A stretch of DNA of 63,834 bases, filler included, from Reticulomyxa filosa (taxonomy: Eukaryota; Protista; Foraminifera): NCBI GenBank assembly GCA_000512085.1. It is 14 parts of 14 records of this genome, joined end to end, with 100 filler letters (N's around TTAATTAATTAA, not from the genome) between each part and the next. Parts side by side here need not be neighbours in the genome. Positions count along the whole stretch, not along the records: positions 7,791 to 12,462 come from ASPP01025054.1; 13 more parts are not named here. One strand, written 5' to 3'. Position 1 is the first letter of the stretch. Every line of letters starts with the position of its first letter. Positions 7,371 to 12,562 of this stretch are shown here, piece by piece. Under the pieces are notes generated by a model that worked only from the letters and a program-made list of their open reading frames with translations, made no database searches and was not told where the DNA came from. The position numbers were made by a program, and so were the translations under genes.

Positions 7371-8939
7371 GGTGCAAAACAACAAACAACACAACTATAT
7401 GCAAACAATATTAATTTAGCAATAATTAATTCTAATTAAAAATAACAGCAACAACAATTGTATTATCATTAAAAATGCCATAATTGCTTTAAAAAAAGGA
7501 AAAAAAGTAAAAAAAATGAAAAACTTTTCCCTTTTTTTGATCCATGACAAAAATCTAGCAATACCAGTATAAAAAAGGTATTTAACATTCTTTTAAAATA
7601 TACAATGACAACATCACCTTTTTTTATAGATATTTTATCCTTAATTAAATTTGATTATTGAATTTTATTGACTCAATGATGTCGCAGCCTNNNNNNNNNN
7701 NNNNNNNNNNNNNNNNNNNNNNNNNNNNNNNNNNTTAATTAATTAANNNNNNNNNNNNNNNNNNNNNNNNNNNNNNNNNNNNNNNNNNNNATTATCAAAA
7801 TTCATAAAAAAGCATTAAAACAAACACATCAAAGCCAAAATTATGCATATATCATTCATTAAACTCGCTAAAATAAATTTTAAGTAAAAACAAAAACACA
7901 AAATATTCAACTAAACATCATATTATCTTATCAATTTTTAAGCACATTAAAATTTAAAATGTAATAAACGTAAAATCAATGGAAGCAAAATTGTTAAAAA
8001 ACATTTATGACTAAATTGAGGAATAATAAAAAAGTCTATATAGTTTGCAGACATAACAATATTAATCTTTTTTTAAGGTTCTTTTGCTATTCAGCATTTA
8101 ATCATAAATTACAATATGCTTAATTTAGCAACAACAATTTTAGAAACACTGAAAAATATTTTTCTGCAAAAAAATATTAATTCAAATAAAAATCAATTGT
8201 CTCTTTTTTTATTCATTCACTTATTTGCGTTATATTATTGATACAATTTCCTCATTGTGGTAATATATTTTTCAATAAAATTAGCAGATCTTTTCATGTT
8301 TCATACATGTATTATCATATATAGCATAGAATAAACTATTAATGAGTTATAATTGATTCTAAAGTTGCATCAACGTTTCTGGCGACATTACAATTATTTT
8401 CTATTTTAGCTTCTTTGGTTTTCCGGCACAGTACTTTCTACAATAGTACCTGTAATCTTTTTAAACTATCAGCTTCACAGTTATTAAAATTTTTTTAAAT
8501 TGTGTAGTTTTAAATAGTTTTGTGTTTGCAAAACTTAATTTTTTTTCGTTGCCTTTTTTTAATTTTAATTCCTCCAATTCTACAGTTTCCTTCTAATATA
8601 ACATTACTTGAATACCTAGATTAAGCATTCATGTATTTTTGAGTGTATGATAATAACAGTTTCTTTAATCTTCAACAAATGAAGGCTTGTGTTTGCATAG
8701 AACACATTTAGAGCCAAGTAAAGTGAGTAATTTCTCCAAACTTTGAAAGATAGTTGGTAATAATGTGTTATTTCGTTTTACAAGTGCATTGAAAAAATCG
8801 TTCAAATCGTAAAAAAAAATTAAAGAAACAGAGATGATGCGAAGATTTTTTGAATATCACATTGGCACTAATCTTTGGTGCAAAAAAAATTAAAAAATTA
8901 CAAGTTCACAAACAAAAAAATAATTCAAAATATATTGTC

Positions 8940-10520
8940 ACGGATTGGAGAGGGGTGTTTGAGGCCGGGGCAATATAAAACAATTCAACATCGTTTATAA
9001 TAATAATAAAAAAATAAAAAAAAAATTTCATTGAGAGAGGATGCGGGCCCGTTGGGCTCTCTGGAGATGATCATGGGACACTGGTGCCTATAAATAATAA
9101 TATTATTATTATAAAAAAAAAAAGAAATTACATAAAAACTTTTTTTTTATTTGCATGCGGGCTACTGGCTCGTTGTGAGCTCTGTGGGGTCTTAGATAGT
9201 GCATATATAAATAATAATAATTATAATTGTATTATTATTGTTACATACAATATTAATTATTACTTACTTTTTTTTCATTGCTGATAGGTTCAGAACTCGA
9301 TTGGTGCACTTAATTTAGATTTGTGTGTTATTGACCCGTTGTCACTTCGGAAGGGGTTTGTAGGCCTGAATTCTATGATGCAGTTCAACCTTTTTGTTAT
9401 AATTAAAACAAAATAAAATAAATCAAAACTTTCATATTTTTTTCACAAATGTGTGGACATTTGGTCTCGTGCACATATGGGTTAGCATGCAGGTGCTATA
9501 TAAAACAAATTATCTTTTTTATTATAACAAATAAAATAAAAAAAACATATCAAACTTTTTTTTTCAATTGCATGCTAGTTGCAAACCCGTTGTCGCGAGC
9601 TGGATACGGTCCTGGCCGTTAGTGCACTATAAGTTACAACAAACATATAATAATAATAAAAAACAAATCAAAACATAACAACAATTTTTTTTTTGATACA
9701 TGTTTGGAGATCGTAGTTGTTGTCTGGATTTGTTCTGATTTAGCTGACATATTACAAATTCAGACCACTTTAAAAAAAAGGTTTAAACTTTTTTTTCTTC
9801 ATGCAGGTTACAAATCCGTTTGTAGCGCTTGAACGCTGTCCGTGGTACTGTTGCACTATCAATAGCAACAATAACATTATTATTATTATTATTAACAAAA
9901 CAATATTCAACTAAACTTTTTTTTTGTTGGATCTAGCCGGGAACCAGTCTTGGCGAGCTGCTGAGTTTGTAGGCGGGGGCCTACAAACAATCAAATATTT
10001 TTATAATAATTAAAACAATAAAAAACATTAACTGAACTTTTTTTTTTTTTTGATGGCTGAGTACAAACCCGTTGAGCGTGCTGGTTGGTTTGGCCACTTT
10101 GGCCTTTCATCAACAATATTTTTTTTTTTTTGCAAATGGGCTGCTAGCCCTTTTGGTGCGCTGGAGTGTGTCTGGGCACTATGGCATATAAACATCATGT
10201 TATTATAATAAAAAAATAAAAAAGTACGAAACTTTTTTTTGGATGACAGGCTGTAAGCACGTGTTGCTCATCTGATCTAGTTTTTATTATCGGTGTTTTA
10301 TTAAAATAAAACCCCGATAAAAAACTTTTTTTTACAAGCTCGGACTTCTGTTTTTGTGTTTGTTGCGCTTGATGTGTCGTGATGTTGTGACATGGTAATA
10401 TGTTGCGTAGGCGAGATACTATAAACTTTTTTTTTGTCTTGGATTATGAACCCATTTATTTGAGCCGGTACGGAGTGTGAGGATGGAGTGCGATGCGGTA
10501 TGATGGCATCTGCCTGCATC
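8940..10520. repeat. Degenerate tandem array of ~14 units (T-tract, 45-90-nt GC-rich cassette, AT-rich spacer)
   Basis: AAACTTTTTTTT-type T-tracts recur at ~9137, 9266, 9427, 9552, 9684, 9785, 9913, 10035, 10118, 10229, 10322 and 10423. They are followed by (C)ATG(C)...AAACCCGTTG...GCTGG...GTGCACTATA-like motifs. Confidence 0.8.
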
Positions 10521-12562
10521 GCTGTTGATGTTGAGGCACGATATTCTGATCAGTGCCTGTGGCATAATGTGATAGAACAGGGGTTTCGGTCGGAGCATGC
10601 GTGTTTTGTGTAGTGACGCAACTTCACTGTGAACGATTTGACGTGATTGAGTAGAAGGTATCATCTATTTGTAGAATGACAAATTGGCAGTTTAATTTTT
10701 GCGTCTGCGTTTCTTTAATGGTCAAGTGTATGGAACTACTTGGAAAAAAAATTCAGCTCAACTGACAAACGCCAAAAACTTTCGAATTATTTGGGAGATT
10801 ACGTTTTAAAAATACGTTGACAACACAATTGGACGTAGTGCAAAGATCTGTGCAGAATTTTCCGTATTCAATTTTTTATCAATATTTCAAAGTTTTTGTA
10901 GAGATAGGACATGCTTGTTGGAAATATTTATGACACTTTATACCGTGCCAAAGAAGTAAAATTTAAATCAAAAATCTTATCAACAAAACTTGCATCTGTT
11001 GACTTCCTTTGCACTAGCACCACAAAAGTAAGAGGTGGTTTGCTTTCAGCGTCCGCGCAATATCTTCGTTTACCAGGGGAACGAAATGCTGTATGACAGA
11101 AGGCCGCGCTATTTTTGGTTTTCCGAAGGGGCAACAACACGTCCCAGTTTGTAATCTAAATTTCATGCCACAGACAAAAACGCTACATCTTGTTTCTATA
11201 AAAGAGAACTGATTTTTAAAACCGCGATTGTGTAGCAGTGGTTATTGACATTTTTTAAGTTATACTTACCTATTATCTGCTCCGGTACATATAGCATTTT
11301 GTTAATTATCAGGATATGGTAATGAGCTCGGATACCTCCACACATTTTGATTAAATATCGCTTTATTGTGATACGCACAACTTCTAAAGTCTCACCAGAC
11401 ATCTGTATTTTTTTCATTGATACTAAATACACAAGGCGCGTAAACTTGTCAACCGATGTTTTCTTTCGGGCCATGTCAATTCTGGTCTTTGGGTCAGGGA
11501 CTTCAACAAAGTCGAGTCTTGGCTGGGGAGAGCTTCCATTTGAATGCTCACACTCACTTCATCCAATACTTTTTCCCAAATATGTGCAATTTTTGTTGAA
11601 AACATATAAATAAAAGCATTGACAGGCAATAACATTCAAAGAGTATCGGTTCGTTCAACTGAATTTACAAAGAGTTTTCTGGACGAATAGTTGTTTTCCA
11701 GATACACTTGTAAAATTTGACTGTATGGACGACAAGATGGGGTGTGAAAAAGAATTTCTTTTGTTCTTTGAGACAATTCAAATGAAGTGATGAATATTGT
11801 GTTTAATATTTGAATAAAACAGACGTAGTCCAATACCAACCTGGAAAAAAAGAAAATTGTCAATGTTGACCGCAAGTGGGTCTCTTAAGCACTTTGAAAA
11901 ATAACTTTAGTGCCTTTGTATTAATAAAACAGTGTGAAGGCAGTAGACGAGCTACTTCATAGTTATTTTAACATTAATTCATAAAGCAATTTTTTTTGTT
12001 CCCAATCATTGTATTTTATCACAAAAACACAAGAAAAAACTGGTTTTTATCGGTCAATCTCCAAACGTTTTGTTTGATATTAGAACAAAGCGAAACTGAT
12101 CCAAAAAAAAAAAATACACAACAACAACAACAACAGAATAAGAACAAAGCCTAGGTGCGATAGTCTTTGTCGCAGGTATCACTGGCGTTTGCCCTGCAAA
12201 AGACGTGTTTAAACAAATTAAAAAGGATGCTATTATCACTATCATAAAAATTCTTGCCAGCAGTGGTGATGGAAGTGGCCTTACAGCAAAGAGTGGTTTG
12301 AGGATGGGAAAGACTATCGTCATACCATTTTGTTTTCTTTGTCTGAGCGTCGTAGACCTGACAGCATCGTGGATGTGTATTATCCCACGTGACATAAAAT
12401 TCGACGACAGAGCAGACTTTAACAAAGGGATTTTTCTGAGTCTGCGTTTTAGAAGAAGAAGANNNNNNNNNNNNNNNNNNNNNNNNNNNNNNNNNNNNNN
12501 NNNNNNTTAATTAATTAANNNNNNNNNNNNNNNNNNNNNNNNNNNNNNNNNNNNNNNNNNNN

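Follow-up and report, generated by a model that had tools for sequence, protein, structure and literature searches.

A diverged tandem array in the foraminiferan Reticulomyxa filosa with exon- and intron-like alternation and no conserved reading frame or RNA fold

Is a row of GC-richer segments, separated by AT-rich spacers with GT...TAG ends, a set of exons, a cluster of RNA genes, or a repeat in decay? This question is raised by a locus of Reticulomyxa filosa within a stretch of 63,834 nucleotides (hereafter the window, i.e. the whole stretch of DNA analysed, assembly GCA_000512085.1), namely the piece at 7791-12462 (ASPP01025054.1), in which the array occupies 8940-10500 and is read on the minus strand. 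A sequence-only reading had described ~14 units here, with persistent borders and variable cores, and had put forward (a) a bank of micro-exon cassettes or a precursor of multiple peptides, (b) a cluster of small RNAs, structured or guide-like, or (c) a decayed minisatellite.

Across 8940-10500, ~13 units follow one another head to tail on the minus strand, each running from a C/A-rich core through a run of A7-14, usually to GTT, and then into a T-rich spacer that usually terminates in TAG. The GC-richer segments measure 36-85 nt (45-85 nt for a typical core) with a GC content of 33-60% (cores staying at 43-62%, near 50%), the ten spacers measured are 43-64 nt long with a GC content of 8-24%, and the neighbourhood stands at 20-29% GC as against the GC-richer cores. 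Strand asymmetry alternates accordingly along the minus strand, with 54% T and 3% C in spacers and 62% A+C in cores. Unit recurrence, put at ~80-160 bp by the sequence-only reading, came out at 80-168 nt when measured from A-run to A-run (12 runs of A7-14, minus strand). The word AAAAAAAAGTT (A8 followed by GTT) occurs eight times where shuffles predict 0.15, each time on the minus strand and within 9137-10434, and all 13 matches to the unit profile lie on the minus strand as well, consistent with a head-to-tail array of one orientation. GT begins 8-9 of 11 spacers and TAG ends eight of 10; most spacers read GT...TAG, as had been described for several, including the example given then (9916-9856). 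Spacers are missing from three junctions: at 10419-10426 there are just the 8 nt GTTTATAG, at 10108-10118 there are 11 nt, and at 9268-9390 two units are fused. Units (U) and spacers (S) are given below in minus-strand order; z-scores between pairs of cores were taken against shuffles, and leave-one-out denotes a profile built without the tested unit.

10427-10500, minus strand: U1, first unit; C-rich core and A9, then directly GTTTATAG, with no spacer; missed by the leave-one-out profile
10326-10418, minus strand: U2; core and A8, then GTT; pairwise z 4.8 to U7
10277-10325, minus strand: spacer S2; 49 nt, GT...TAG; folds whole as one hairpin, z -5.5
10233-10276, minus strand: U3; short core and A8, then GTT; leave-one-out E 0.008
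10179-10232, minus strand: spacer S3; 54 nt, GT...TAG
10119-10186, minus strand: U4; core and A13; 11 nt from U5; leave-one-out E 5e-7
10038-10110, minus strand: U5; exact CAACGGGTTTG in the core, and A14, then GTT; recovered by leave-one-out
9981-10037, minus strand: spacer S5; 57 nt, GT...TAG
9917-9980, minus strand: U6; core and A9, then GTT; pairwise z 5.5 to U9; palindrome with the end of S5
9856-9916, minus strand: spacer S6; 61 nt, GT...TAG, with an (ATT)6 run
9789-9855, minus strand: U7; core and A8, then GTT; leave-one-out E 1e-5; z 9.4 to U9
9685-9775, minus strand: U8; AT-richer and degenerate, and A10; GT not directly after the run; leave-one-out marginal
9627-9684, minus strand: spacer S8; 58 nt, TAG end
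9556-9626, minus strand: U9; core nearest the consensus of the family, and A9, then GTT; NGF frame interrupted by a TAA
9497-9555, minus strand: spacer S9; 59 nt, GT...TAG
9437-9496, minus strand: U10; degenerate, with an interrupted A7 run; missed by the leave-one-out profile
9268-9390, minus strand: U11; two units fused directly, lacking an intervening A-run or spacer; A8, then GTAAGT
9204-9267, minus strand: spacer S11; 64 nt, GTAAGT start, without terminal AG
9140-9203, minus strand: U12; core and A9, then GTT; leave-one-out E 1e-5
9088-9139, minus strand: spacer S12; 52 nt, GT...TAG
9030-9087, minus strand: U13; core, then a T10 run in place of the A-run; z 4.6 to U4
8940-8976, minus strand: U14, terminal fragment; resembles only the 5' part of U6 and U11 (z 3.4 and 2.6)

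The array and its strand are real, but homology among the units is weaker than the earlier description implied. A MAFFT alignment of 14 units has a mean column identity of 37%, cores agree with their consensus at ~63% of positions, and the leave-one-out profile recovered six of the 14 units at E<0.01 (U3, U4, U5, U7, U9, and U12), with U8 and U11 marginal and the other unrecovered units missed. Roughly three further units display pairwise core similarity at z>4.5, and three or four have no demonstrable homology, with U1, U10, and U14 placed by border and position only. The network of core similarities is centred on U9 (U7 z 9.4, U5 7.5, U6 5.5, U12 4.6) and includes links of U4 to U7, U13, U5, and U2; divergence among units is star-like, with U9 nearest to the consensus. 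The 11-mer CAACGGGTTTG, proposed as part of the typical unit, is exact in two units only and within two mismatches in one more, which taken alone is not above chance.

Borders are indeed kept better than cores, but the earlier picture of persistent borders around variable cores holds only in part: by eye, the 5' parts of cores group into two or three subtypes and are not hypervariable, and the spacers are homologous too. Similarity between spacers exceeds what composition alone provides (mean z 1.66 vs -0.10 in AT-rich flank controls), and the repeat unit is hence a core, an A-run, and a spacer of together ~125-130 bp, not a cassette set between fixed borders. Tandem Repeats Finder reported only microsatellites and did not detect the array, because the copies are too diverged, falling under the ~70% identity that this tool needs.

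In most full units, a T-run of similar length lies 9-16 nt past the A-run (9540-9565, 9772-9797, 9120-9150, 10215-10241), so that an A/T inverted repeat coincides with each such border; a repeat finder listed these border repeats as inverted pairs linking different units. A 230-nt C-rich stretch lies upstream of U1, spanning 10427-10660 on the minus strand, with 45% GC and a plus-strand GC skew of +0.3; no spacers, A-runs, unit similarity, or tested protein families were found in it.

Coding potential was evaluated relative to a frame anchor, defined in each unit as the triplet that aligns with AAC in the NGF motif. The CCAGC-type word precedes this anchor by 6 nt in six units but by 7 nt in three, and the frame between two conserved DNA motifs is therefore not fixed, a result obtained without crossing any homopolymer. 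Putative exon lengths of 93, 44, 61, 64, 67, and 71 nt leave 0, 2, 1, 1, 1, and 2 modulo 3 and do not share a phase, the distance from border AG to anchor is 1 or 2 modulo 3 in no order, and U9 contains a TAA in the anchor frame. Agreement with the consensus at codon positions 1 to 3 was 0.56, 0.70, and 0.67 across the eight best units, and since the third position is not the most variable one, no coding signature is present. The peptides quoted in the sequence-only reading do occur, as does an in-frame TAA, in the unit at 9556-9626; frames are kept neither between conserved motifs nor across junctions.

U1 and U2 can be read through in a single frame of 82 codons from stop to stop, or 72 residues from the first ATG. 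The 72-residue frame had no relative in a word search, the 82-residue frame had none in an exhaustive search among 1.84 billion representatives, and the longest open frames had no Pfam match, these similarity searches having used open frames singly and unspliced. By eye, a signal peptide was not apparent, the upstream ATG frames at 10664 and 10519 both beginning with polar residues. A frame can also be threaded by hand through U2-U8 via alternative AG sites until it breaks at U8/U9, which is expected by chance given the three to four acceptors per junction. Possible assembly errors in homopolymer length would weaken the cross-junction frame test, but not the 6/7-nt gap or the periodicity test. 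Given the motif gap, the exon lengths, the stop codon, and the absent periodicity, both continuous and cassette coding were rejected. Option (a) is accordingly not supported, with no kept frame, no codon periodicity, no relative of an open frame, and no hydrophobic N-terminus to be seen.

Searches for RNA features led to a similar result. Rfam models at E up to 10 gave five chance matches, none of them recurring, ARAGORN found no tRNAs, the folds of individual units on either strand had z-scores scattered around 0 and were no better than shuffles, and RNAalifold assigned 0 consensus pairs to the eight best units on both strands. On these grounds (no Rfam or tRNA match, shuffle-like folds, and no shared pairs), neither a structured small RNA family nor the guide-like RNAs of option (b) are supported. 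Spacer S2 (10277-10325), between U2 and U3, folds over its full length into a nearly perfect hairpin (-15.1 kcal/mol, z -5.5); no other spacer has a stem containing GC, and S2 has a weak chance match to an Rfam microRNA model. From the end of S5 into the start of U6 (9962-9987, z -6.4) runs a perfect 10-bp palindrome whose loop measures 4 nt; one half of it is found again in U11 and U14, where the matching arm is absent. Both of these strong hairpins are private to one unit and therefore look like local mutational palindromes. Inspection by eye gave no consistent match to Paramecium-type eliminated sequences, C/D boxes, H/ACA boxes, tRNA A/B boxes, or branch-point words. In metagenome contigs, a pattern scan returned 106 single matches, which we read as chance; searched with the unit profile, they contained no array.

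The same piece contains a relative of a known gene. A minus-strand frame at 11199-11558 matches residues ~13-103 of eukaryotic uL16 (RPL10) with E 4e-13, and also yielded a weak Pfam match and an atlas lead. This copy is far more diverged than usual for the protein and carries a deletion. By eye, the match continues in another frame (NAICTGADN) after a change near 11295, is interrupted by a candidate 114-nt intron (11269-11156, GTAAGT...TTTAG), and extends past it as LQTG...FGKP, a continuation without statistical support, with a premature stop near 11017. The uL16 copy, at 10931-11590 on the minus strand, is probably an unprocessed, decayed pseudogene, and having such a diverged copy as a neighbour indicates that the region holds decaying duplicates. 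Its candidate intron has the canonical donor GTAAGT, as opposed to the donor-like GTTT of the array. Farther out, a 103-codon Cys-rich open frame runs on the minus strand from the piece edge to a TAG (12154-12462), with a T12 run and a (TGT)6 microsatellite beyond it. Neither a Pfam match nor an atlas lead was obtained for this frame, and the opposite strand is likewise open over 12154-12462, such that a gene on one strand, if on either, is a candidate only.

Taken together, we read the array as an old non-coding tandem duplication of an exon-plus-intron-like or retrocopy-plus-flank module that is now decaying, and assign this reading a probability of about 0.5. These data lend no support to a micro-exon bank, a precursor of peptides, or a cluster of small RNAs, and among the three options put forward earlier the decayed minisatellite (c) fits best, although neutral decay does not fully explain the conservation of the borders. 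The founding module would have joined 60-70 nt of C/A-rich sequence, closed by an A-run, to a T-rich segment of ~55 nt between GT and TAG; it may have been a single exon and its intron, or else a short retrocopy, polyadenylated and accompanied by its AT-rich target DNA. Unequal exchange or replication slippage would then have duplicated this ~125-130 bp module head to tail ~13 times, before substitutions brought the cores down to ~63% agreement with the consensus and one-base indels arose between conserved motifs. Three spacers would have been deleted, and the 8-nt remnant GTTTATAG is what would be expected from a deletion between TTTAT words at two spacer ends. Microsatellite-type slippage would have acted within spacers, and local palindromes would have formed, with the A-runs persisting because homopolymers re-expand by slippage. 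Spacer-less junctions, fused units, unit-private palindromes, and spacer microsatellites are all signs of decay. The analysis demonstrates the repeat itself, the homology among cores and among spacers, and the lack of a kept frame or shared fold; we infer both the origin of the module and the absence of present selection.

Some properties fit plain decay less well. A8 plus GTT is exact in 8 of ~13 units while cores stand at ~63%, which is better than even decay predicts, and slippage can renew the A-run part of this border but not the GTT. Departures of cores from the consensus are symmetric (strong-to-weak 0.29 and weak-to-strong 0.26 per site, from small numbers and related sequences), and nearly all weak-to-strong gains in cores are C on the minus strand. 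Symmetric changes, along with GC-rich cores in a setting of 20-29% GC, are unlike AT-biased neutral decay. The borders, the core GC, and the alternation of A+C and T match the exons and U-rich introns of a minus-strand transcript, from which they may stem, or they may alternatively have been inherited from the founding module.

Such a transcript, if live, would have the cores as mini-exons and the 43-64 nt U-rich spacers as GT-AG introns, and would produce either a non-coding RNA or else a repeat protein that is Lys-rich, disordered, and fast-evolving, with miscalled or slippery A-runs causing the apparent breaks of frame. We consider this unlikely, though it is the likeliest of the rivals. 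GT at the start of 8-9 of 11 spacers and TAG at the end of 8 of 10 are what it predicts, spacer lengths are tightly distributed and close to the 87-nt mean intron reported for Reticulomyxa filosa (PMC13746701), U-rich spacers alternate with A/C-rich cores that hold ~50% GC, borders are kept better than cores, and U1 and U2 share one frame over 82 codons. However, it fails both tests in which no A-run is crossed (the 6 vs 7 nt gap between motifs and the missing periodicity), an in-frame TAA lies in U9, junctions of 8 and 11 nt cannot be introns, and the last units are without a donor. GTTT is also a poor match to a U1-type donor, where the neighbouring candidate intron has GTAAGT, and no relatives of the open frames were found. 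Decidedly more doubtful is a fully specified version, in which a spliced minus-strand locus comprises around a dozen homologous mini-exons ending in slippery A8-14, introns of 43-64 nt that are U-rich, and an unusual GTTT donor, and in which slippage of the polymerase or ribosome on the A-tracts could generate mixed Lys-rich peptides, unless the product is a long non-coding RNA.

It is also improbable, to a greater degree, that the units are small RNA genes, with the TATAG border as a TATA-like element, the variable part as a free promoter gap of 14-24 nt, a transcribed conserved 3' block reaching to the A-run, and the spacer T-run as terminator. The conservation gradient would suit this, proceeding from TATA through a variable stretch to a conserved 3' block, and a T-run of at least 5 occurs within 12 nt after the A-run in 6 of 12 units; in half of the units, however, just T3 follows the A-run, TATA-like words and T-runs are common in DNA so AT-rich, no known RNA family was matched, no stable or shared fold emerged, and by eye there were no C/D or H/ACA boxes. 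Serial insertion of SINE-like retroposed copies into A/T-rich targets, each with an RNA-derived body and a poly(A) tail, would account for bodies that all end in A7-14 (an A-run follows 12 units), for star-like divergence with U9 nearest the consensus, and for units that abut head to tail. We nonetheless regard it as very improbable: the spacers are homologous and so belong to the repeated unit, the units lack similarity to tRNA, 5S, or 7SL, no target-site duplications were seen by eye, and thirteen copies on the same strand at regular spacing fit tandem duplication better. Least of all do we expect an assembly artefact, either in the array itself or in its homopolymer lengths; the piece is short and has many long homopolymers, but units differing at about one-third of positions make a collapsed or chimeric young repeat unlikely.

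The array was also compared with known systems. With degenerate minisatellites or old tandem repeats it shares a head-to-tail arrangement in one orientation, homology of the whole unit, lengths that vary by internal deletion and slippage, and the lack of a reading frame or RNA fold, whereas its unit is sharply two-part (core ~50% GC vs spacer ~15% GC) and its borders are splice-site-like, with the A-run and GTT kept better than the rest. Tandem exon duplication includes Dscam-type clusters of mutually exclusive exons, and these likewise present homologous GC-richer segments of similar length with short GT...AG spacers on one strand; the array differs from them in its inconstant phase and length class, its one stop, its lack of protein-level conservation, and its intron-less junctions. 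Schistosome micro-exon genes carry symmetric exons, in multiples of 3, after a signal-peptide exon. The array resembles them as a row of many very short exon-like segments in an AT-rich genome, but shows no multiple-of-3 symmetry and no apparent signal peptide. Introner-type repeated introns, which PMC13746701 mentions, are likewise a family of similar short sequences bounded by GT...AG, as the spacers are; the spacers here, however, sit in one tandem array alongside homologous cores instead of being scattered through unrelated genes.

Should the array prove to be what it looks like, it amounts to ordinary repeat DNA in a protist genome rich in repeats. Its value then lies chiefly in a warning: one duplicated module, without any coding function, can hand down exon- and intron-like alternation, GT...AG borders, and recurring peptides alike. 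If, instead, splicing at the boundary of A-run and GT were true, the locus would represent an unusual type of donor and a gene assembled from slippery mini-exons with poly(A) ends, and this in a group in which little is known of gene structure.
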